Shown here one piece after another: positions 194 through 33,132 of a stretch of 33,132 bases of DNA. The position numbers and the translations under genes were made by a program. Below the pieces are notes generated by a model that did no database searches, had not been told where the DNA came from, and worked only from the letters and a program-made list of their open reading frames with translations. This stretch comes from Pelomyxa schiedti (lineage: Eukaryota > Protista > Evosea): contig JAHLWZ010000985.1 of NCBI GenBank assembly GCA_020536535.1, positions 1-33,132 on the forward strand, written 5' to 3'. Numbering within the stretch: the first letter of the stretch is position 1; every line of letters starts with the position of its first letter.

Positions 194-2095
194 ATGGATG
201 TCGCGTGTAAGGTTGTTGGGTTCCCGTTTAAGGCACGGGTGAGAGCGGCGTGGATTGTTGTATTCGGCATTGCTATCGACTTTGGTATTTCTTCTGTAGA
301 GCTGATGTGACTTTTTTTTTTTCTTTTCTTCCCCTCCTAACAGGGTTGTATGATTCTATGGTTCCGTTGATGCCTATTTATCAATCTATGATGGAGTGAG
401 TGAGTCAAAGTTAGACTTTTTTCTTGGGTTATCTAATTGTTCTTTTCAAACAGGCTGAGCCAGACACAAGTGGGTGTATTTTTTGGAATTTATAGCCTTG
501 TGGCTTTGGTTGTCTCGTTTCCAGTGGGAATACTGTCCGATAAAGTGGGCCACTTAAAACTGTATTTTATCGAACTTCCTTGTGTACTTTCCTAACAGAT
601 TCAGGTGGTTGGTGGGATCTGGATTTCTCCTCACTTTTTCTTCCCTCATGTTCGCTTTTGCAAATTCCTATGGTGTTCTTCTTGGTGCTCGTTGTCTTCA
701 GGGGTAAGGTACAACAGAAAATATGTGAGTCTTACATTTCCGGCAGTTTTTCTTCTTCGATCTCATGGACGGTGTGAAAATCTATTTCTATGACAACATT
801 CAACTTTATTTTAGGTCGCAATAGCGTATATGGCTATACCTTACAAAGAGTCATTTGCAGCAGTTTTTGGCATTGCTTCAGTGTGCTTGTTATTTTTCTT
901 TTGTGAGACTTAACTCCTCAAAACAGGCAGCATGTCTCGTCGGATCTTTGATATTACCGGCAGTTACTGGATGGTTATACATGGTCCAGGATGATGTTTT
1001 CCTTCCTTGCATTACTATTGCTGGAGTCTGCGCTTTGAGCTGTCTTCTTGACTTCACTCTCCCGTCTTTCAGCTCTTCACCAAGTATGAGTCCGACGTCG
1101 GCTACTGCTCCACGTGTGCCAGTTAATGTGGATGAGAGTTATGCGGACTCGACCTACGGGTCTGCGTTATTGGCCACAGAAAAGCCGCCAGCGGCTAAAC
1201 AACTACCAATGAAAGTGCTTTTACACTCCTCAGGGTTGTGGTGCGTGTACTGCTCTAATTGTTTGCTGTCTCTGCACCTGGGCTTTGAGTGTGCTTCCTG
1301 AGCTTGGTCAAAATTTAGTCTGCTTACTCGGAGTAGATACATATGTTTTCCGCTATACATGTCTGATGTCTTGCACCTTTCAAGTGGCTTTGTTGGATCC
1401 ATTTTTGCTGTCTCTGTACTCTGTACTCGCTCAAAATCAGAGATTGTTTGGCTTGTAGCACACTAATGCACTCCTTAGTGGACATCATTGTCTCTGCACT
1501 TCTTGGACCATTGATGGACAAAATTCCACGTTCAAAGCTTGTTGTAATGCTTATATCTGGTTGGATAGCAGCGTCACTGCCACTTCTGACTCTAGTTTGC
1601 ACAAATAAGTGGGTGTTCTCTGCTCTGTATGTTATACAAACAACGGCATTGCAAATTTGTGTACTCCCAGAGATTACCCTGTTTTTCCGCATCTACCTTA
1701 AGTTGTGCGGCACCTCCCCCTCTTCATCAGAAACAGAGTCCACTACCAAATTTGATGATGCGACTTCTTATGGCAAGGCTTTTGGAGCCTTCAACTCCTC
1801 CTTCTATCTTGGTATCCCCTACACGCGCACTAGTAAGTTGCAAAATAACAATAACCAACTCCATCCAGGTCTAGCACTGAGCACCGCCCTTTCACCCCTA
1901 TGGGAAGTAATTGGTTCCTTTTATATGTTCTGTATAACTGGATCCCTGGTTTTCAGTGCTTTGGTTGTCACGTCTACCAAGTATTACTGCAGTATTTTTA
2001 AACAAGGTGCCCTGCACACAAACTGCCTTCTTCAACTCACAACCCAATCCCTCAGAAACATGACTGCACGTGGCTCAATCACCACGCCTTTCTAG
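194..2095 (+). CDS. Major facilitator superfamily transporter (DHA1/SLC18-like), multi-exon
   Basis: Spliced translation from ATG194: MDVACKVVGFPFKARVRAAWIVVFGIAIDFGLYDSMVPLMPIYQ...FPVGILSDKVG (motif A)...LLGARCLQG; second-half motif LGPLMDKIPR; many hydrophobic helices. The 3' end is approximate. Confidence 0.8.
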
Positions 2096-2114
2096 GAAAA
2101 TAATCACAACAAAA

Positions 2115-3176
2115 ATGAACCGTTTTGTAGTTATTGTTGTTGGAGTGGCGACTTTTGTTTGTCTATCGGCAGCAGCTGATATTGTGAACCTCGATGTGCC
2201 CATGGTTCATCAGGTACAAACTAAAAAAAAGTGAAGTTAAAACAACTTGTCTGTGGTTTATAGGCCTCTGTCATGAGGCATACAAACAATAACACAACCA
2301 CACAGAAGTGGGATGTTCCCACTTGGTATGATGGCAGCTGGGGATGCGGACCAACCAGCACATTGATGGCCGTGGCCTATTGGGGGAGGTTGCTGCCATA
2401 CACAATTTGGTTGGATGAGCCTGATTCTCACACAAATGACTATGGCTGGTACTGCTTGTTTTGGGTGGGGTATCACTTTTGCTTGTTGTTTTTGATTTGT
2501 ACCTTCAGGTATGTGCCAAACGTATATACATGGGGGGAGACAACATTCAATGTTACGCAAGATGATGCGAGTGGAAATCCTGCTTGGGGTGCCTACGGCT
2601 GGTGCACAGTTGAAGGTATTGTTCTGTGCTAATTTCACTGTACGTTATACACTGACTTTGGTTTTTCCGCTTCCTCTTTTTGTTTTACCGCTATAAAGGT
2701 GCCGCTTGGGCTGAAAAGGTCAGAAAACACAGTTCCCTTTTTGAACTGCTAATTTTGATGCAGATGCAATCTTATGCAAATCAACACAATCTCCTCTCGG
2801 ATTTCAATCAAACGGCAACCCTTGACTATGTTAAATTATTGCTGGATAAAGGGCATGTTGTTGTTCTTGATACCTGGTGAGTATTCCATTTTCGTGCCCC
2901 TGTGCTTGTCGGTTCAACATTTAATTGCATTTACGGCAGGTTAACATCATCAGGCCACATAATTACTGTACGAGGCTATGATGATTCTGACAGAGTTATC
3001 TGTAATGACCCCTATGGCAATGCCAACAACAAGAAAACATATGGCACACTTACAGACGGAGGTATTTCGCATTGTATCCCATTCCCTCGACCTGAGGATC
3101 ACTATTAGAAAACGTGTATTACACATGGGACTTTGTGGGACCGAAGTGGATGATAGACGTTTACCCACCTCAGTAG
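2115..3176 (+). CDS. Secreted papain-fold peptidase, C39-like (Peptidase_C39_2-type), multi-exon
   Basis: Signal peptide MNRFVVIVVGVATFVCLSAAA; VPMVHQ|KWDVPTWYDGSWGCGPTSTLMAVAY (oxyanion Gln, catalytic Cys); SGHIITVRGYD (His); NDPYG (Asp); last exon ENVYYTWDFVGPKWMIDVYPPQ, stop 3174-3176. Confidence 0.8.
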
Positions 3177-3361
3177 GATCAAATCAAACTGACTAGGCGA
3201 AGTAAAATAACCTTGTCCAGTTCTAACAATTTGGAAATTCAAAACAGAAAGCCTTTAGCTTCGTATTGTAATTTGTTTTAAAAAGATGGCTACAGTGTAC
3301 GTGCTTATGTTTATTGGGTTGGCATGTGGGCAGTGGGTGTTTCGTTCTGTGGATGTTACGT

Positions 3362-5540
3362 TTATGTTCCCTTCTTGCACATCTTCTTGGCACAGTCACA
3401 GTAGCAACTGTCAGCCCAGTCCTGGATAAGGGTGTGCCTCTTGTGACAGAGCCGTGCACAGGTGTCGCAGTACCCCACTCTGGATGTCTTCCAGTCAGGG
3501 TTGCAAGTCTCACACCAATACCACTTCTGGGATGATGGGTTGCTGCCGGTGGCAACGTAGGTGCACTGGTTACGTGCCACGCATTGGGTGATAGCGTCTG
3601 CATAGGGATCGAATCGCTTGCAGCTTTGTTGCTCACAGTCACAGAAGCATTGCACACTGAACTTGTGAGTGAGGTTGTGTCCGGAGTGGCACCGCTCGGC
3701 ACAGGATTGGCAGCACCCAACACCAGTCTCGTCACAATTGGGGAAGCAGGTGTAGCAAGAGTAGAACTCCTGAGCACAGTAATTGGCGCCGGTCACAGTC
3801 CTTGTACATGTGTGCTGTGCCACTGCCTTCCTAATTCCATCTTCATAAGGATCAGGCTTCTTGCAGTCCGCATTCTGGCAATCACAGAAACTCTTGCTGC
3901 TTGGTACTACAACGAGGTCGTGGTTGGAGTGGCACCTCAGTGCGCAAGACTGGCAGTAACCAACTCGAGAAGTTTGCCAATCTGGGTTGCAGGTGTTGCA
4001 CCAGTTCCACGGCTGCGCTGTAAGGGTTTCCCCTGTAGCAGTGAGGGTACAAATGTGGTGCTCCAGGGCATACTCCAGTGTTTTGGTGGAATCGACTGGT
4101 CTGGTTTTTTCAGAAGATTAAAACTTTGTGAGTATAAAAGTACGAATTACGTTGGAGTAGGGGGTGCCACTGGAGTTGGGATAACCGCCGGAATCTGCAC
4201 TTGAGGAAGGGCGGTTGGACTTGTCACAATAGGCACAGACACAGTAATCCCAGAACTTGTAAGAGATGAAGTGCCAAGAGGAGTTTCACCGGACCCCGAC
4301 ACGGACGAACTGTCCTTGTGGTGGTGATGCTTGTGTTTATGGTGATGTTTGTGGCCATCCGGCGGTGGCGATGTTTCGACAACGGGGGTTGCCACCACAG
4401 GAGTGGCCACTACAGGGGTTGTTACTGGTGTGGGAGTTACTGGTGCTCGACTTACAGCTGGCATTGGAGTTGGAGTTGGTGTAGCGGTTGGTGTACTGGT
4501 AACTACAGGTGTGGGGGTGGGAGTTACTGCCGTTGGTGTTGCTGTAGTTTTTTCATCACGATTTTCTGCCCCACCTTCTACATTTTTTACTCCAGCAGTC
4601 TGTGTTGGTGCCTTTGAAGCTGAAAGGGGTTATTATATTGTGAAGCAAGTATTCACGTACCGGAAATGAGGTTGGTGAGAAGAAGAGGAGAATCTTCACA
4701 GAAGGTGAGCTCAATGATAAGCAAAGTGCCGCTATCCAAAACGCTTTCCACGAGGAACTGCACTTCAGGTTCGAGGAGAATTTCTAAAATTGAATTCGTT
4801 GTCAGTAAGCCTTGACACCTTAAGAAGCTCACCCCTTTCTGAAGGAACAAAAGAAAATGCTTGTAAGTCATATCCCCAAGAATTCTTCAGGAAGAATAGA
4901 GAGCCAGCACAAACGCCAGTTTCTTTGTTCGTCAAGAAATTTTTTGTAACTTCCATATCCAGTGAAGTGGAGGTAAAGCTGTGCCAGGTGATCCTATTAC
5001 CACGTCGATAGTGGTTCTGATCTACTGAGACACGAGTTGTAATGCCACGATATAGTCGCTCAGTTGCAGAGCAAGCAACACGTGGCATTTTGCGCAGTCC
5101 AGCCAATAGAAGGTAAAGAAGGCCACGCATCTTGCGAAGCATGAGAGTGCTGCGAGTATACAGGGCTTTATTAATAACACAGTATGGGTTTTTGTCGCTC
5201 TCCTCGGGGCCGAAGTCGAATGTATACAAGACAACAGCACATCTTTCTTCAATATTCATGTCAAAGCAATCTGCTTCACTGATCTTTTCTTTGTAAATTA
5301 CAGCTGCCACCAATCCAGCGTCTTTAGCCACTAACAAAAAAGAAGAAGGGGAGTTTTTACCGAACAAGCGCGTTCGACACACGCCTCGATAACTTCTTCG
5401 GCATGAGCAATGCCGGCGTCAACAACTGCACGGTCAAACGTGGGTACTTTCCAGTCGGAGGGGAAAAGTGGCGCCAGATCGTTCAAACGCGACAACAAGT
5501 CGTCGCCACCAATGTTCGCCGTAATAACTCGCGACGCCAT
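3362..5540 (-). CDS. Arg-specific-type mono-ADP-ribosyltransferase (R-S-ExE) fused through a Thr/Pro linker to three tandem UBR-type zinc fingers
   Basis: ATG5540. ART motifs: AVVLYT, NPYCVINKAL, RLYRG (~5042-5058), SFTSTS (~4960-4980), and PSEREILLEP after removing intron 4784-4832. GT-AG splices keep the frame into a TP-rich linker and three C-x-x-x-x-TG...Q-x-W/F-x-x-C-x-TC...C-x-x-CA-x-x-CH-x-x-H...CDC units. TAA at 3362-3364. The first intron donor is uncertain. Confidence 0.8.
4350..4545 (-). repeat. Thr/Pro/Val low-complexity coding repeats (TPVVA x3, TP dipeptides)
   Basis: Translation TPTPVVTSTPTATPTPTP...TPVTTPVVATPVVATPVVET. Confidence 0.8.
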
Positions 5541-15853: not shown

Positions 15854-18800
15854 ATGAGCAGCACAATACCCCCACTCGGCGCCGATTGTGGGACGCCAAC
15901 AAGACCAGAACCCACAATCGAGAAACAGCCGCAAGGCACCACACCCACCGGGGGCCTGCTCGCCCCTCCGTCGCCCAAACGGTGTCGCTTCGGCACTGGG
16001 CCGTGCAGTCCACAAGTACCGCAGCAAGCGCACCCCGACTTCATGCCGACTAGCGAGCATTATGGGCAAAGGAACGGCGCAGGCCACGCTGCGTCGGGCG
16101 CCGCGTCCGCTGGGCTGTATCACGATCACGGTGGCGGTGAGGTAGAGAGTGAGGACTACGAGAACGAGAACGGCGAGGACGGAGATGGCGAGGAGTACGG
16201 GAACGGCGACGAAGGAGGGGCCGCCTATCAGGAAGATTATTATGGGTCCGCGGCGGCCGCAACTACTACCACCACAACAACAACCTCGTCCTACGCGGCG
16301 ACGTCTCCGCCCCCTCCTTCTGTGGAACTGTCGTTCGCTACTCCTCAGACTCTGTCAATGGCCACTGTCCGCAGGGTAACAAGCGGCGGGCTCCCTCCCA
16401 TAATTCCGGCGTCCCCGCTACCGCCGATTCTGTCGCCGCCGCCGCCTCTCTACGGTGCAATCTCGACGCCTCAGTCCCCTCCCCCTACCGTGGTTGGTGT
16501 CCCTGGACAAGCCGTCCCGGTGCTCGGCACACCGTGGCAACAGCAGCAACAGGGCGCCGGTTCAATCCCGCCCCCTACCATCACCTCTTTTAGCCACCAC
16601 GACTTCGCCGCCCTCGTCCAAACTCCCGGCGCCATCCAAACCCCCGCCCCCGACCACGAACCTGGCCCAGACCCCCCACCCACAATCCCAATCTCGTCGG
16701 CGTCCGCCCTGATGCCTCCCCCCAGGACCGTCCCCACCGCCACCGCCGCCCCCTCCTCCACCTCGGCGGCCCTGGCCGCCCTGGACTCCGTGCTGATGCC
16801 CCCGCCGAGCTCCGTCTCCGTCTCGCACGGGGGCGCCCCGGGCGCGGGGGGCGGCGGCGCCGGCGCGGCGGCCCTGGGCGTGGGCGAGGACGCGTACCTG
16901 AGCTCGACGTCGCGGCGGACGACGCCCAAGACCGGGCGGCGCGCCCCGGGCCGCGTGTCGTCGGCGGTGGCGCCCGACACGCGGCGGTCCGCGCGGCGCA
17001 ACCAGGCGCTGCCGACCGGCGCGAGCAAGCACGCCAGGGAGGTCATGATGGCGCACAGGAAGCCGTCGCAGAAGATCAACGTGGCGGACTTGGCCCGGCA
17101 GTTCCGCACCGCGGTGGTCGCCGTCCCCCCAGTCGTCGGCGTGGCGGCTGCCGCTGCTGCTGCTGCGTCGCCGCCGCCGCCGCATCCCCCGCAGCAATTG
17201 CAGCCACAGCCACAGTCACCGCAGCCGCAATTGAATTCTCAGTTGCAGTTGCAGACGCAATTACACTCGCAGTCACAGGTGCAACTGCAGTCGCTGCTGC
17301 AATCGAATTCTCAGTCGCAGTCACTTTCACCACCACAGTTGCACTTTTTACAGTTGCAGGCACAGCTTCAGTTGCAATTACAGTCACAATCGCAGTCGCA
17401 GCTGCAATCACAGTCACAGGCAGAACCCCTCCAATCAAACACTGTGGCTTTGGTGGAACACAACGATGTTGCTCATGTGGCTGCTGGGTCAGGGCCTAAC
17501 AACTTGCTTGGTAATCACGATGCTACAAGTATTGAGGGACTTGCCTCGGGGAGCACTGAGCCCCCTGCTAACACCATACCCCTTTCAACCTCATACACTG
17601 AGAGTACATCATCTTCGTTGAACTCGGGGCCAACCGCAGTTAATCTTCCTATGACGAGTTCATCATCAAATTCTTCAATTCCTCCAATGGACAGTCTCGA
17701 TTCAGAATTGCTTGCAACAGAGACAGACATTTCGTATCACCATATCTACAAGAATATCAGAGCTAACTCCTTGCTTAGGTATGAAGATTTGCGCCTACTT
17801 TCTGACAGGGATATAGTTGAGAAGAGAATTCAAGAGGAATTGGTTTTTCCTTTCTAATAGTGATGTGTGTTAACTTCTTAGCAGGCCTTGCATCAATGTC
17901 CAAAAGAGCTTCAAGCTAAATTGGGCGCTATACCAGATCAAGGTTTTGTGCCTCCCTTTTTTCATCTAATGGTGTTGATAGGTCTGCTGGAAGACGTACG
18001 AAAAGAGCAACCGCACAATGCTCCACTCGAATCGCTTCAGTACATACAGAAAAATCCGAAAGACCCAAGATCTGTCTACACTCGAAGACACATTAACTTT
18101 GTTACAGAAAACATGAGGGTAATGGCCTGCAATTGTTGCACAAAATTTCTTAACATAGCAACTAAAGGAAAAACGGGAACAAGAAGAATGCCAGATGGAA
18201 AATCAGGAACTTGTAGGTACTGAAGAAATCGTTCTCACTGTTGCTATATATCATCCAACTAAGCTGCAGAAACACCAAGTTTTTTTTGTTTGTTTTACAA
18301 TCCTTGTCAATCTTCTAAAGGAATTTGCTGTTCTTGGATCTCAGAAACTTACTGAGTTGAAAGACAAAATATACTGTCTGAATAACAATACTTCAGCACC
18401 CGTCAACAGTAACGCTTCAGCACCAGTCGACAATACTGCTTCAGAACCTGCCGATAGCAATCCTTCGGCACCAGTAGCCAGCAACCCTTCAACACCAGTC
18501 CACGACAATTCAGCCATCAATGGCAATAATTCAGCACCAGTAAATAACAGTACGCCAAGACAAATCGCCCCTGGGCACGTTGTAGCATCAGCACATGTGA
18601 ACTACCCCAGCAGCTTTTTTTTTATTGAAGGGACATTTTATGACGATATGAGAGAGCCCAACAATATTCGCTACAGTGTACCAATTATAGAATTTGCCAA
18701 CAATATCACTCACAATTATAAACGACCATCCTTGGCTAAATCAAGGCAATCGAAAACTTCTACCTCCCCAACAGCCTTGCCAGCCTTGCCAAGTCCAAAT

Positions 18801-21727: not shown

Positions 21728-24700
21728 TTACATTTTGGATGCCCACATCTGTTTGGTTGGTGAGAGGAATGTTGTGCACAAAACATGGGAATTACCTTAA
21801 TGGAGTGGTCGGCTGAACCACTGAATAGAGTGTTCCCGTGAACCAGAAGTGCGTCGACGCTGCTTGAGTGCCGCACCATTGTTTGAGTGCACCGCCAGGT
21901 GTCTGTGCTCCACACTTTGATGCTACTGTCATATGACCCACTGAAGAAGCGGTTCTCTTGAACTCCCAAGGAGTACACAGCTCCAACATGGCCTTCCAGT
22001 CTGCGCATGCAAGTAAACGTCTCCATGTTCCATACCTTATGAAGTTAGTTTGGTTGCCAGACATCCTATCATGGCACCTCGATTGAGTTCTCGTAGATAC
22101 CCGCAAGTAGATACTTGTTACAAATTGCCAGTGCATATATACTCCCCCCATGTGATACTAGAGTTCTTACACATGTAAATCTTTCCAAGTCCCATTGCTT
22201 GAATAAGAAATGAGATGGTACATGGATCAAATCAAACGCAAACCTTTATCAAATTGTAAGACCCGCTATACAAGTAACCACCACCAGATGTTATAGCTCT
22301 CACCCAGTGGTTGTGCCCAACTAAAGTTGTTATGCATTCATAGGTGTCTAAGTTCCAGACCTAGAGTTGGTAAGGAGTAATAGGAAGAGGAGTGCAAAAT
22401 CACTTTGAGCTGTTGATGAGACCCACTAATCAAATAGCCAGCAGCAATAGTAAGTGCACAGACAGTATTATCATGTCCTGGGCATGTTGTGATGCATTCC
22501 ATTCGCTCCAAGTCCCACACCTTCACAAACAATGAAAAAAAAAAAAAAAAAAAAAATGAGTCAAGAGCTGGCGGGAAAAATGTGTTTCCTGGCGTGCCTT
22601 TATTAGTTTATCAGATGAACCGCTAAAAAGTTTATTCCCAATGGCAACTACAGCATGAACAATTCCTTCATGGCCTTTAAGCACTTGCTTGGTTTTTACA
22701 GATTTCAGGTCATTTAGATCCCACACCTAAGCTGTAAAATATATCATTTCCCCTTTAATACATATTTACACTGCGTACTCTTATTGTATAATCAGAAGAG
22801 GCACTGATTAGCATGTTTGCTGAAACAGTAAGAGCCCAAACAGGGCCAGTGTGCCCACTGAATGTACCCTTGCAATTAAGCTGTGGCTCAAGGTGAAGAG
22901 GATGCTCTTGTAAAAGTAAGAAAGCGATAATGCAGTGGTGTGGTACCTTCATGAGGGGGTGGTGGGGGTGGTAATGCGGAGATTTGATTTTTCATTTCTT
23001 GCAAAGCCTCCTTTGTCATTTCAACTGTTTGTTGGAGACCGGAGACTGTACTTTCAAGTTTATGTATTCTCTCTAGGACAATTAGTTTGGTGAACAGTGA
23101 GAAACAGGATGGGTGGGCACTTGATTTTGCGACCAGTTTTCCTGCAAGTTCCGCATACCTTGTTTCCATATTTGAGAGTTGCTCTTGCAGGCGATGATTT
23201 ACTTCGTCTCTTTCAATGATAATTTTACTGTGTAAGGTAGTGAGTGACTTCGTTCTTTGCTGAATGACACCCTACTTAAGGTCATTGATCTCTCGTGAGG
23301 TCTTCTTGATAAAAGATTTAATTTTTTCATATGTGCACTCCGACAAGTGTTGTTCAAGTTCTTCCTTTACACCCTCAAATTTGCAGCCAGCCTAGAAAAT
23401 AATTATGGTCAAAGCCTTACATTGGAAGTACTTTTCTATGGGGACAGGGTCTGTGATTACAAGTCTTCTTGTGCTCCACCATATCCATCCTCCTTAAAGG
23501 AGCACAACTTTCACTGTAGGGACATTGCTCCCAGGCATATTCACAAGTTTCCTTAACACTTGAGCGAAATTGGAAGTAAACAACTAAGGGAACCTGGTGA
23601 TGCAACAGGTCCGCCAATTGCACTTCCGCGGGGCATCCCTCTGGATCCGGGATAGGATCCCCATTATCATTTGATTTTACACCATATTTACATTTCACTA
23701 ATAACTCTTCAATTTGTCCAGCAAGCTGTAGGTATTGTGAGTGAGAGACTTTTAGTATTCTACCTACAGCAAGGTTCGCAACAAGGTCGTCAATTTTCAG
23801 TTCTCTATTATCAAGAGGACACAGAAAGATTTGAGCTTGTGCAGAGGATCGCCTGGTACTAGGTGGGAGTATTCCTGACGAAGACACCGAAGGAGGTGGG
23901 GGATTGCCTCCAATGGGTGGTGGTAAAATGCTATTGTTGTTGCTGTTTGCTGTGGATGCAACAACGTGTGAGGACTGCTGCTGTGACACACTTACTATGC
24001 AATGCAGGCAAAATGTGTGGCCACACTTAGCAATTACAGGATTCTAAAGAGGCCGTTATGGGCGAGATTGGAATGTGACAAATACCAAGAACAGGCCCTT
24101 GTGCAGTGGGCACAAGAGAGTCTTAGATGGTTTAGTCACGAAATACAAATCCTGGTCACCAGGAGTGATCGATATGAGGCTCGATCTTGTATGTGCAGCT
24201 GCCGCAGCTGAAGCAGACGCTGAGGCAGAGGCCATTGATATAGCTGTCGGGACGCTGGAAAGGCTTCCTATTGTGGAGGTGGGAGATGATGTAGAACGTC
24301 CCGTTTTGTTTGGCACACTTGTGGGGGAACTTACTGATGTTGCATTTGTTGATATTGGGGGTGGAGGGGGTGATTGCAGGTATTGTTGTCTATAGAAGGA
24401 ACTCGGAGGAAGACTGTGCCTATTATTTACACTACCTAGACTGCCAGGAATTACCGAGCTGTCAACATTGTCTTGGCAAGAGGCACTGGACGCTGTAGAT
24501 GAGGAGTGGCGGTGAAGTGGTCGCCTTGGTGAGGTGGGTGGAGTAATTTCCTGATAGTGGCATGGTAGGCTTGGAGAAGGAGAGTCATACAGATCGTCCT
24601 CGATGTCGTCTCCATAGGCCTCCTCATCATCCACGTCATACACCTCGTCGCCGTCGTTCTGATGGTGGAACAGCTCCGGCTGGTGTGGCCGTGCCTGGGG

Positions 24701-25195
24701 CGGCGGCTGCTGTTGCTGCGAAAAGCTCTGTCTCGAGTTCGAACGAGAGTGCGAGTGCTGGTGCGAGTGAGAATGCTCCGCAGAAGGGCGCTCCGACGCG
24801 CGGGAGTGCGAGCGGGAGCGCGAGTGCGTGGGAGTGGGAGGCGCCTGTATCGCCGGCGCCGGGATAAGCACGGGAGGCGGAGGCGCCGGCACGGGCACCG
24901 GGACGTACGACGGCGATCCCGGGGGGTCCGCGGGCGCGCCGATGGGCAAAGGAGGCAGCGGCGAGTTGCTCATCGCCGGCGGCGGAGGGATGTTCGAGGC
25001 GTCATTGAAATTGGTCGTTGTCGGCGGCGCCGGTACGACTGGCGGCGGGGGTATTGGCGGCGGCTGGATCTCGTCGTACGTAGTGGGCTGCGGGATCTCG
25101 CTGGGCTTGGTACTGCTGCTTACGGCATGTATGTTTGAGCTTGTTGTGCTGTGCCGGCTTCCGTGCTTGCTGCTTTTGCTTCTCGACGAGGACAT
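21728..25195 (-). CDS. TRAF7: TRAF7-like E3 ubiquitin ligase (Pro-rich N-terminus, RING, TRAF Zn finger, coiled coil, WD40 repeats)
   Basis: YFVTKPSKTLLCPLHKGLF...PVIAKCGHTFC...CPLDN; CKYG...DPEGCP; CKGTFSGHTGPVWAL; GHNHWVRAI...YLYSGSY; GGSIYALAI...YENSI; MVRHSSSVDAL. Each matches the TRAF7 pattern as I recall it. Confidence 0.85.
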
Positions 25196-30018: not shown

Positions 30019-30192
30019 TGTCTATCAAGAAGAATTATTTTTGTTATTATTCCTATTTACAATCTTTCTGTGGTACAACGGCGGGTGATTCAAGGAAAGG
30101 CCATTAGAATGAACGCTCCGGCCGTTCCTGTGAATGGCCGGCTATGTCCCGAACCAAGTTCCCCGATGATTCTTGGAACTTGCTCTCTGACA
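30019..30192 (-). repeat. Putative 3' LTR (~174 bp)
   Basis: Begins TGTCAG after the PPT. The candidate end ...AATAATAACAAAAATAATTCTTCTTGATAGACA gives TGTC/GACA termini. The 5' LTR is not in the window, so the end is unverified. Confidence 0.45.
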
Positions 30193-33132
30193 GATTATCC
30201 TCCCCTTTTTGAAATTGTCGTCCTCGACAACTCCTAACCGCTTTGGTGCCGGTGGAGTAACTGCGTACAGCTTGTAGTCGCTGAGGCGGGCTGGAGGGTG
30301 GCGTTTTCGGGTTGGTCTGCTGGTATTCGTTGTTGGTGCGGTCACCGCTTTTGTCGGTGTTGAGTCGGCACCCGTGGTGGGCAGGTCTGCATCGCTATCG
30401 GCCTCCTTGTGGGTCGATTGTGCGGCTCGTGTTGATTGTGCAACTTGTGTTGTTGTTCTTGTTGTCTCGGGTGGTTTTGTGGGCTCTGGCGTTGTTGGTG
30501 GTTGCCACTCCGCGTCTCGTGGGTCAATGCCGCCATTGGCGTTGCGTGTAAGGGAAGGTACTTCTTCGTACTTTTCAATCTCTCTCTTCCTGTTTTGTCT
30601 CTTCCTTCCCTGCTTTTCTTCCCACCTTTGGTGTCGTTCTTCTTTTGTGTCCAGGGTGCCCTTGGGTTCCAGTGATGGATCAAATGTATCTCCTGCTGCA
30701 ATTTCTGGTGCTGCCTCTGGCGTTCTTGGGTAATACTCCTTGAGTCTGCTCACGTGGATCAGCTGGGCAAGGGGAAATCCTCTGTCATTCTCCAGTTGGT
30801 ACAGATTAGCATTGACTTTGTCAATGATGACAAAAGGGCCTTGCCAACGAGCTGCAAACTTCCTGCCCTCCTTGTCTTCATTCCGTGTGATCTGGTTCAC
30901 ATACATCCAGACTTGCTGTCCCACATGAAAGCTTGGAGGATTCTTCATTCGACCTCTCTCAGTTTCCTCCTGATGTAACTTTTCCTTTTCCAGATACATC
31001 CTAACAAATTTAAAGGACTCGTGCAAGCCTTGAATCCAGCGTTTCGTTTGCTGCTCAATGCCGCACCTTTCCTCCTCCCTCTCAAATTGCCTGTCCCCAG
31101 GCAATTGCATCTCCGTTCCGTGTGCCAGGAAGAAGGGAGTGTGCCTAGTTACGGCATTGGAGCTCGACCTGTAAGCACACAGCACCGGCTGGAGATAGAT
31201 ATCCCATTTCTGCTTGTGGCTATCTGCATAGATCCGTAGCATGTCAATCAGTGTCCTGTTGAAGCGCTCAACCTGTCCATTTGTCTGAGGTCTGTATGCT
31301 GTTGTTAACCTATGTTCAATGCTGAAAATCTTATTGACTTCTTCCACCAGATCATTCAAAAAGTGACTGCCTCTGTCTGAAATGAGGATGTCAGGGATCC
31401 CATGGCGGCAGATCCAGAAGTCAATAAATATTCGTGCAGTAGTTGCTGCGTCTGCACTGACTGTGGCAAAAGCCTCAGGCCACTTTGTGAAGTGGTCCAC
31501 GAATACCAGGATGTATTCGTTCCCTTGCTTGGTGCGTGTCAACTTACCAATATAATCCACACCAATCATCTGACGTGGTCTAGATGCAACTGGCAGGCTC
31601 ATGGGAACTCCCTTGTTCAAGTTGGATCTGTTCCTGTACTCTTGGCATTCCCGGCAGGTTTTGCAGTACTGCTGAATGTCCTGCGCCATCCCCTTCCACC
31701 AATATCTCCTCCTGACCTTGTCAAAGGTTCTAGCATATGACAGGTGGCCGCCTGCAAGCGGGGAATCATGAAGCTCTTGCAGGACTCCCTCCTTCATGCT
31801 GCTCGGCAATACTACACAAAGGTTTGGCATCTGTCCACGCCCAGCTGTGCACCATCTATACATAATGTCATCATCTCCCTTGAGAAACAGCTCTTTGGTG
31901 TGCCACAGCTCCCGGTTCCATTGCTTATCTCTAGAACCAATCTCTCTTCCACTGACCATGTTCTGTATGTCCAGAATGTTCTCATCAAGGCGCTGACTGT
32001 TTTGTATCTTGGCCTTGAGCTCATCTGCAACAATAAACAGGAGTTTATCTATCGGATAATGTGAGAGTGTGTGAGGTACTGCCATCTCTTTCCCAGGTTT
32101 GTGAATAATTGTGGGGTTAAATTGCAAAAGGGTTAGAGACCAGCGTGCCAGTCTTCCTGAAAGATTCTTTGCTTCCAGCAGATACTTCAGAGCAATATGA
32201 TCTGTATACAGGATAAGTGTTGAGCCATGAATATAGCTCCTCCAGTGCTTCATGGCATCCACCGCTGCCAAACATTCCCGCTCTCTGGTGTCGTAATTCT
32301 TCTCTGCCGGCGTCAGGCTTCTACTCCAGTAAGCTAATGTTACCCTCCTTTTATTAATTTCTTGAAACAAGACCGCTCCTAACCCGATTCCAGATGCATC
32401 AGATTCGATGCAGAAAGGTTCCTTACGCACTGGGAACCCCAATATTGGCGCTTCGACCATTGTGCGTTTCAACTCCTGGAATGCCCTCTGTTGTGGTTCC
32501 TCCCATATAAATACGCTATCTTTCTTATATAGTTCCACCAAGGGCTGGCTTTTGCTTGCAAAGTCTCTTATAAATCGCCGGCTGAAGCCCACCAACCCAA
32601 TGAACTGCTGCACATCAGCTGGTGTTTTTGGGGTTGGGAATTTGCTTACAGCTTCGACGTGGCTTAGGCTAGTTGCTATACCTTCACCAGAGATTCTGTG
32701 CCCAAGGTAAAGCAATTCCTTTTGAGCATACTGACCTTTATTCATGCATATGAATAGGTGGGCATCACTGAGCCTCTGAAGGACATGAATCAGCCTCTGA
32801 TTGTGTTCTGGCATGTCTCTTCCAAATATTAATATATCATCAATATACACAAGGCACTCCTCCCAGAGGAGGCCTCACAATATTAGATCCATGGCCCTTT
32901 GAAAAGTTGCTGGAGCATTGGAAAGACCGAATGGCAGTCTATTCCATTCGAACAGGCCACCTCTAGTGGTAAACGCGGTTTTGTTGCTTATCTTTCTCAG
33001 ATATTGGGATTTGCCAGTATCCACTGCATAAGTCGAGGAGCGAGAATACCTTCTGTCCCGCCAGTGTTGTTAAGCATTCCTCAATGTGTGGTAAAGGGTA
33101 TACATCCCTCTCTGTCACCATATTCAGCTTTC
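30142..33132 (-). pseudogene. pol: Disrupted Gypsy pol polyprotein
   Basis: Open for 902 codons from 32850, but the upstream RT has a 1-nt frameshift near 32983 (DKQ-c-KTAFTT) and an in-frame TGA at 32875-32877. Confidence 0.85.
30195..30210 (-). promoter_or_regulatory. Polypurine tract (plus-strand primer) of the retrotransposon
   Basis: AAAAAGGGGAGGATAA on the minus strand, 2 nt before TGT at 30192. Confidence 0.75.

Follow-up and report, generated by a model that had tools for sequence, protein, structure and literature searches.

ADP-ribosylation and the recognition of N-degrons by UBR boxes have each been well studied. Mono-ADP-ribosyltransferases (ARTs) with an R-S-ExE active site include Vis of Vibrio splendidus (4xzj), HopU1 (3u0j), rat ecto-ART2.2 (1gxy) and Tre1 (6dre/6drh), which are secreted, injected or glycosylphosphatidylinositol-anchored single-domain enzymes, or domains of polymorphic toxins. 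They also include the SidE effectors of Legionella, amoeba-infecting bacteria, in which an R-S-ExE mono-ART acts within the ubiquitin system. UBR boxes of the canonical UBR1/2 type have a His at the second zinc site and carry an Arg-selecting Asp (D153) in the loop that follows the CDC motif. In the boxes known as UBR 'subfamily 2' the second zinc site is all-Cys (PMC10687169). An Asp and the backbone of an aromatic residue (D150 and F148 in UBR2, D1715 and F1713 in UBR4) hold the α-amino group of the substrate, and the preference of UBR4 is for aromatic N-termini (PMC10687169); UBR6 lacks N-degron binding (PMC5606531). We found no described link between ADP-ribosylation and UBR recognition, and our literature search found no work joining zf-UBR with an ADP-ribosyltransferase. 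Here we describe a gene of the anaerobic amoeba Pelomyxa schiedti (Archamoebae) in which a predicted R-S-ExE ART head is spliced in frame to a linker and three tandem UBR boxes. The window analysed is the complete 33,132-bp contig JAHLWZ010000985.1, and the gene occupies positions 3362-5540 of its minus strand.

The whole coding region, from ATG to stop, has bounds identical to those of the coding sequence deposited for KAH3743499.1 ('hypothetical protein Pelo_15094', 653 amino acids). The exon map was obtained by exact matching of this protein to the window together with reading of the sequence, and it has five exons on the minus strand. Exon 1 (5361-5540, residues 1-60) encodes the N-terminal helices of the ART domain and exon 2 (4833-5283, residues 61-210 and base 1 of codon 211) the ART core. 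Exon 3 (4661-4783) runs from the remainder of the E211 codon to residue 251 and supplies the ILLEPE strand and the last ART β strands. Exon 4 (4151-4619, residues 252-408) encodes a Thr/Pro/Val-rich linker, predicted to be disordered, and exon 5 (3362-4100, residues 409-653 and the stop) the three-UBR-box array. The four introns are all of the GT-AG type: intron 1 (5284-5360, 77 nt, phase 0), intron 2 (4784-4832, 49 nt, phase 1, within the E211 codon), intron 3 (4620-4660, 41 nt, phase 1) and intron 4 (4101-4150, 50 nt, phase 2). Exons 2-5, when directly joined, gave one open frame that closes with the stop codon 3364-3362, and the deposited model bears out the claim of an earlier sequence-only reading of this stretch that ART, linker and fingers are joined in frame. 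Intron 1, for which that reading gave no bounds, is supported by the deposited model, by a phase test and by the alignment of relatives. The 77-nt form restored the frame, left no unmatched insertion relative to those relatives and fitted better than shorter alternatives; a 30-nt GT-AG stretch (5360-5331) failed the phase test, and 35- or 50-nt forms had poor donor sites.

A Pfam scan of the full protein detected the ART domain and no other. PF01129 (NAD:arginine ADP-ribosyltransferase) scored 41.8 bits, against a cut-off of 22.3, over residues 73-236, and exon 2 by itself reached 32.7 bits. The catalytic motifs noted in the sequence-only reading could all be located: R139 in LYRG (5049-5047), S165-T166-S167 in FTSTS (4971-4963), and SERE, with E209 at 4839-4837 and E211 encoded by base 4833 plus 4783-4782. 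Its statement that intron 4784-4832 interrupts the codon of the second Glu in ExE was confirmed as well, and an intron of the same position and phase is present in a P. schiedti paralogue (P0155). R139, S165-T166-S167 and E209-x-E211 are invariant across 17 aligned relatives, and so is the spliced E-x-E-ILLEPE (17/17 aligned family members, most of them from uninterrupted open reading frames (ORFs)). Homology between the head and its relatives spans residues ~15-257.

A search of PDB sequences with exon 2 only gave ART2.2 at an E value of 0.2 as the best match obtained. With a family profile the best match was Vis (E 5e-11), followed by HopU1, rat ART2.2 and Tre1, and the head motifs align with YRG, FTSSS and the loop ahead of the catalytic Glu in ART2.2. 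An AlphaFold model of the head, built on the family alignment, had a predicted local distance difference test score (pLDDT) above 90 over residues ~30-245. In Foldseek this model matched HopU1, XopAI, ART2.2, Tre1 and Vis, each at probability 1.0; the template-modelling (TM) scores for the targets were 0.59-0.78. Structural alignments with the four solved ARTs named above had 15-22% identity; PF01129, the R, S-T-S and E-x-E residues and the fold are common to them and the head. Judged by sequence and predicted fold, the head is an R-S-ExE (cholera-toxin-like, ARTC-type) mono-ADP-ribosyltransferase domain with intact catalytic residues, in agreement with the toxin-type assignment made earlier. 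Since its nearest relatives are arginine-modifying R-S-ExE enzymes, and given the ExE motif, arginine is most likely the target, and by analogy the head would be enzymatically active. SidE proteins gave no match in the PDB family-profile search or in the Foldseek search with the head; their domain partners and logic differ, and the resemblance is at most a lead.

The Pelomyxa protein departs from Vis, HopU1, ART2.2 and Tre1 in having spliceosomal introns and three tethered UBR boxes and no signal peptide. Neither a signal peptide nor a transmembrane segment was found in the protein: the N-terminus is not hydrophobic, Kyte-Doolittle values over 19 residues do not exceed 1.48, and the ATG is preceded, 6 nt 5', by a stop in the same frame. 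This upholds the earlier claim that a signal peptide is lacking. The protein is no ecto-ART of the vertebrate type, which is characterized by a signal peptide and a membrane anchor or secretion.

The C-terminal exon encodes three 63-residue fingers at 81-residue spacing, each with nine Cys and two His at matching positions: UBR box 1 (3863-4051, residues 425-487, with the motif FCDC), UBR box 2 (3620-3808, residues 506-568) and UBR box 3 (3377-3565, residues 587-649). Over the six frames of the window the core Cys/His pattern has exactly three matches, and all 11 zinc ligands are kept in every finger (33 in total). Pfam and NCBIfam scans of the finger exon returned nothing, so that of the two domain kinds expected in the spliced protein PF01129 was recovered by Pfam and zf-UBR was not. 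The UBR identity of the fingers, which the sequence-only reading had proposed, was established by other means. A phmmer search against PDB sequences matched the UBR boxes of BIG (E 6e-9), UBR4 (2e-7) and FBXO11/UBR6 (6e-6), the best match of box 2 being the BIG/UBR4 box. Among 1.84 billion representative proteins the array had 600 relatives, and zf-UBR was matched by Pfam in 118 of the 132 that were scanned. A custom profile made from 41 Pfam-certified UBR boxes scored 44.1, 42.3 and 47.7 bits on fingers 1, 2 and 3. The three-finger array was modelled with AlphaFold at a mean pLDDT of 83, and Foldseek matched this model best to the boxes of UBR4, UBR6 and UBR5, among them the peptide-bound UBR4 box 8j9r (TM 0.75, root-mean-square deviation 2.2 Å), which box 3 matches; UBR1, UBR2 and PRT6 were matched more weakly.

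The last ligand of the second zinc site is Cys, not His, and this places the fingers in subfamily 2. Sequence comparison and modelling therefore assign them to the UBR4/5/6/7 type and not to the canonical UBR1/2 type, whose recognition of N-terminal Arg, Lys or His the sequence-only reading had invoked; the nearest boxes are those of UBR4/BIG, UBR5 and UBR6, and an all-Cys second zinc site is the subfamily 2 arrangement (PMC10687169). With the boxes of UBR4/BIG, UBR5 and UBR6/FBXO11 the fingers share the fold, the nine Cys and two His, the Cys as last ligand of the second zinc site and, with UBR4-type boxes, the Asp and aromatic residue of the α-amino site. They differ from them in being present as three tandem copies, in a loop between the second and third Cys pairs that is three residues longer, in a shorter loop before the last Cys, and in escaping detection by Pfam zf-UBR. 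The fingers are 40-51% identical to one another and barely alike as DNA, which argues that the array consists of old duplicates that have been maintained. The full-protein Pfam scan found no E3 module (RING, HECT, F-box or PHD); beyond the head the protein consists of linker and fingers.

The evidence in the locus points to the ART and UBR parts forming one spliced protein, and a two-gene reading is unlikely. Exon 5 has no Met until 10 residues from its end and hence no usable start codon, so the finger array cannot begin translation alone. Retention of intron 3 leads to a stop two codons past exon 3, and keeping either intron 3 or intron 4 closes the frame almost immediately; the linker exon is therefore sensible only if it is spliced at both ends. 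In the paralogue P0155 the C-terminal end of the ART, a T/P-rich linker with His/Lys patches and a C-terminal module, in that case Sel1 repeats, all lie within a single exon, and the position and phase of intron 2 are common to both genes. GC content is level across the ART/UBR join. The P. schiedti gene models were made with Augustus and refined with PASA/EVM and transcriptome data (PMC8887013). We consider it highly improbable that the fusion is artefactual, whether by separate transcripts having been merged by the predictor or by a chimeric join in amplified single-cell DNA. Such an origin would fit a genome obtained from multiple-displacement-amplified DNA with automatic gene prediction (PMC8887013), an in-frame Met in the linker exon (ORF 4147-4464), the stop that a retained intron 3 would place just beyond the ART exon, and our failure to find a second ART-UBR fusion in the searches made. 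It sits poorly with a single frame that stays open across 653 codons through four GT-AG introns, with the lack of an earlier Met in exon 5, with the joining of head, like linker and C-terminal module in P0155, and with the even GC content over the join.

The ~150-residue Thr/Pro-rich linker is predicted to be disordered (AlphaFold pLDDT <50). The full-length AlphaFold model was uninformative on the placement of head and fingers relative to each other, and the fingers had no alignment depth in it. A His/Lys patch lies in the linker at residues 341-352 (4318-4353, minus strand). The linker of P0155 is of the same Thr/Pro-rich type, with His/Lys patches at residues ~343-350 and ~392-396. That such patches are kept in the disordered tethers of both paralogues hints at a function, for example in metal binding, pH sensing or localisation. 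A reading of the protein as extracellular and mucin-like, with a Thr/Pro stalk and a disulphide-rich domain, was rejected, because neither a signal peptide nor a transmembrane segment was found and because the Cys and His residues are arranged as the zinc ligands of UBR boxes are.

The possible ligands of the fingers were considered by transferring the alignment of UBR4 to them. In fingers 1, 2 and 3 the α-amino-site motif reads FCDC, FCDC and YCDC, and the Asp is kept in all three. Binding of free N-termini by the fingers is plausible. The position of UBR4 F1671, which confers the aromatic preference of UBR4, is occupied by L, Y and P in fingers 1-3, and that of K1708, in the second pocket, by P, F and W. 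The loop after CDC and before the last Cys reads QNAD, EQQS and AKKM, with an Asp in finger 1 alone. Given these differing pocket positions, the three boxes may differ in preference. Ligand binding is mixed within subfamily 2, and Arg/Lys/His N-degron reading is therefore not to be assumed; N-degron reading by the array is speculation, and so is a role in defence or symbiont control, as suggested in the sequence-only reading.

An alternative, which we regard as rather unlikely and yet as deserving serious consideration, is that the ART head is active and the UBR array is a zinc-finger docking or oligomerisation module instead of an N-terminus reader. Its ligand could then be, for example, an internal motif, a ubiquitin-system component or something else, and the array would place or regulate the enzyme without selecting N-degron-like substrates. 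UBR6/FBXO11, whose box is among the nearest to the fingers, binds no N-degron and dimerises via zinc (PMC5606531), and the counterpart of the Arg-selecting loop is short and, in fingers 2 and 3, not acidic. Moreover, UBR arrays are mostly partnered with UBA, ubiquitin-like and RING domains, which suggests the ubiquitin system at large and not N-degrons specifically. What speaks for N-terminus binding instead is that the Asp and aromatic residue that hold the α-amino group in UBR2 and UBR4 (PMC10687169) are retained in every finger, and that the best fold match, 8j9r, is a peptide-bound box.

Relatives of the ART head were collected in a protein search that was word-indexed and length-limited. 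They are 28-44% identical to it and have as partners Sel1 repeats, SPRY, an AAA ATPase, Flg_new with a transmembrane segment (in which case the ART is C-terminal), and Lcl_C with SH3. The closest of those collected is P0155 (P. schiedti 'sel1 repeat family protein', 1024 amino acids), with a head 44% identical, a like linker, and a phase-1 intron in the last ExE Glu codon at the same aligned position as in the ART-UBR gene. It differs in having Sel1 repeats in place of UBR boxes and in encoding linker and module in one exon. The ART-UBR gene is thus a member of a family that recombines one head with varied binding modules. On the contig of P0155 (L008, 9304-9354 and neighbours), the ART-Sel1 gene is adjoined by genes for a FIST and TIR-domain protein and for a Gα/Arf-like protein, which may be coincidence.

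The head occurs in bacterial contexts as well. A Coxiellaceae genome bin encodes a 682-amino-acid Lcl_C-ART-SH3 protein (L009, ORF 1930-3978) whose head is 41% identical, next to a SET-domain gene (L009, 4542-5909), and a second gene of this kind, the bacterial-type P0156, adjoins lolB, groEL/groES and accBC. In these two proteins the head is 40-41% identical over residues ~18-250 and has the same catalytic motifs; they differ from the Pelomyxa protein in being encoded by intronless bacterial genes and in having Lcl_C and SH3 partners and no UBR box. The ART and SET neighbours of the Coxiellaceae bin carry eukaryote-like domains, typical of effectors of amoeba-associated bacteria. One Flg_new-ART gene adjoins a eukaryotic splicing-factor gene. 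From these bacterial and eukaryotic contexts it follows that the head has been exchanged between intracellular bacteria and anaerobic eukaryotes, and the exchange could have run in either direction. A scan of metagenome contigs added 126 further relatives of the head, of which 80, with a median GC content of 21%, were kept; they point to an expansion of the ART head in some AT-rich group of eukaryotes. The short AT-rich contigs with an ART head come from few metagenome projects. A toxin-like ART head that is common to anaerobic protists and Coxiellaceae and is recombined with many binding modules has been little described.

On the UBR side, the best 150 of the 600 matches were examined. Among 132 relatives of the array, tandem UBR boxes were partnered with UBA (16), RING (~10), astacin (4), ubiquitin-like (4), serpin (3), protein kinase (3), AIG1 GTPase (2), FBXO11-like β-helix (2), PARP (2) and calpain (1) domains. 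The closest relatives of the array among the matches listed are multi-UBR proteins of protists and metagenomes, with 33-44% identity and the same tandem spacing; one of them, from the amoeba Pyxidicula operculata (P0004), has five UBR boxes and a RING. Two others among the closest relatives listed, both metagenomic, consist almost entirely of UBR boxes, namely P0002 (L002, 6001-10272; 1423 amino acids), with 15-20 matched stretches, and P0003 (993 amino acids), with 12-14. The gene for P0002 is on a 335-kb contig, where it immediately follows a gene for a ~6400-amino-acid protein. Tandem UBR4-type boxes appear as a widely shuffled adaptor in protists, joined to proteases, serpins, kinases, GTPases, PARP and RING, and this too has been little described.

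The PARP pairing is of particular relevance to the Pelomyxa gene. Two proteins from marine (TARA) metagenomes, P0062 (L006, 2234-3415) and P0180, which are 82% identical, have a PARP catalytic domain followed by two UBR boxes, an undescribed architecture. The PARP-UBR protein was found by clustering and then Pfam scans, and a search for a PARP-signature motif found nothing; the second PARP match among the 132 relatives is probably P0180 or another member. As in the Pelomyxa protein, a member of the ADP-ribosyltransferase superfamily stands on the N-terminal side of tandem UBR boxes, which are of the same type. The difference is that the enzyme belongs to the PARP clade (PF00644) and not to that of the R-S-E enzymes, and that its sequence is unrelated to the Pelomyxa head. 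The PARP-UBR proteins can be read as an independent pairing and so as a hint of functional coupling, or merely as a reflection of the promiscuity of UBR arrays.

No other fusion of an R-S-ExE ART with UBR boxes emerged. An ART related to the Pelomyxa head was absent from the best 149 of the 600 array relatives, and no UBR box was present in 18 relatives of the ART head. A word-indexed search with the UBR region returned the query alone. The UBR Cys/His pattern was absent from all frames of the 80 metagenomic ART loci, which are mostly 1-3 kb long; the same test on the window as a control gave 3. At the depth examined, the ART-UBR fusion is a singleton among 1.84 billion representative proteins. 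The architecture is new, built from two known kinds of domain, and is present in GenBank as an uncharacterised hypothetical protein. The sequence-only reading had stated that no ART-UBR architecture was known; for the R-S-E type our searches agree, and the two PARP-UBR proteins provide a parallel that qualifies the statement.

A singleton drawn from two parent families that swap partners freely might also have arisen recently by exon shuffling and serve no selected function of its own, its domains being intact and their combination neutral, lineage-specific and transient. We judge this to be very unlikely. No catalytic residue and none of the 33 zinc ligands has been lost, the divergence of the fingers from one another in protein and DNA indicates an old, maintained array, and the ART part has introns, one of which it has in common with a paralogue that is just 44% identical.

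The reading that we favour, by a modest degree, is that this single nuclear gene encodes a cytosolic, modular mono-ADP-ribosyltransferase whose head is aimed by the UBR array, possibly by its gripping free N-termini. The N-terminal head of ~250 residues would move ADP-ribose from NAD+ onto arginine side chains of proteins, by analogy with its solved relatives, and the enzyme would be located in the cytosol. The three UBR boxes would serve as an aiming module that docks the enzyme on partner proteins, perhaps through a grip on free N-termini by the Asp of the (F/Y)CDC motif, and the flexible, disordered tether would let the head modify whatever the fingers hold. The protein would in this way combine a constant head with a C-terminal binding module that can be exchanged for others, in this case a trivalent array of UBR boxes.

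Several points weigh against this reading. Whole-genome amplification can produce chimeric joins, and the assembly was made from whole-genome-amplified single cells (PMC8887013). The assignment of both parts to one gene draws on the gene model and the sequence. Pfam zf-UBR (PF02207) had no match up to an E value of 1 on exon 5 and up to 0.1 on the full protein. The loop after CDC has 4 residues in the fingers, versus 7 in UBR4, and has an Asp in finger 1 only, and finger 3 is basic there; to assume that the fingers bind N-termini would not be a safe default. The fusion is a singleton, and its conservation can therefore not be demonstrated. What the analysis shows is the gene structure, the domains, the preserved catalytic and zinc-binding residues and the modular make-up of the family; the activity, arginine specificity, cytosolic location and UBR ligands of this product we infer, and the case concerns one gene in one amplified single-cell genome.

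If the favoured reading of an aimed, arginine-type ART is right, the pairing with UBR boxes would be a concrete case of a UBR box aiming an enzyme other than a ubiquitin ligase. A more specific proposal is an N-terminus-directed writer, in which the non-identical UBR boxes would capture exposed or newly cut N-termini and the head would mark arginine; we hold this to be decidedly doubtful. If true, such a writer would parallel the N-degron pathway independently of ubiquitin, and the marine PARP-UBR fusion would mean that the coupling arose more than once.

The remainder of the window is unremarkable eukaryotic sequence, with genes of the MADS-box, SH2, SNAPC3, Ras, amino-acid permease and peptidase C39-like kinds and a pol ORF of Ty3/gypsy type; scans of the window for Rfam families and tRNAs gave no matches. 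Bacterial contamination is excluded by the spliceosomal introns of the ART-UBR gene, one of them common to the paralogue, and by the eukaryotic neighbours (MADS, SH2, SNAPC3 and Ras). A multi-exon gene on the plus strand (~2273-3108), with a C-terminal part like Peptidase_C39_2 (26.9 bits), is convergent with the ART-UBR gene, the 3' ends of the two lying ~250 nt apart. The pol ORF (30142-32850, minus strand, 902 amino acids) encodes the end of a reverse transcriptase, RNase H, an integrase zinc finger and core, and a Tf2-type SH3. A 667-amino-acid ORF of low complexity, rich in Pro, Ala, Gln and Ser (15854-17857), coincides with a sharp GC peak of 0.70 at 16001-17000 in a contig of otherwise ~45% GC, and a second GC peak at 24001-25000 corresponds to another Pro-rich ORF.

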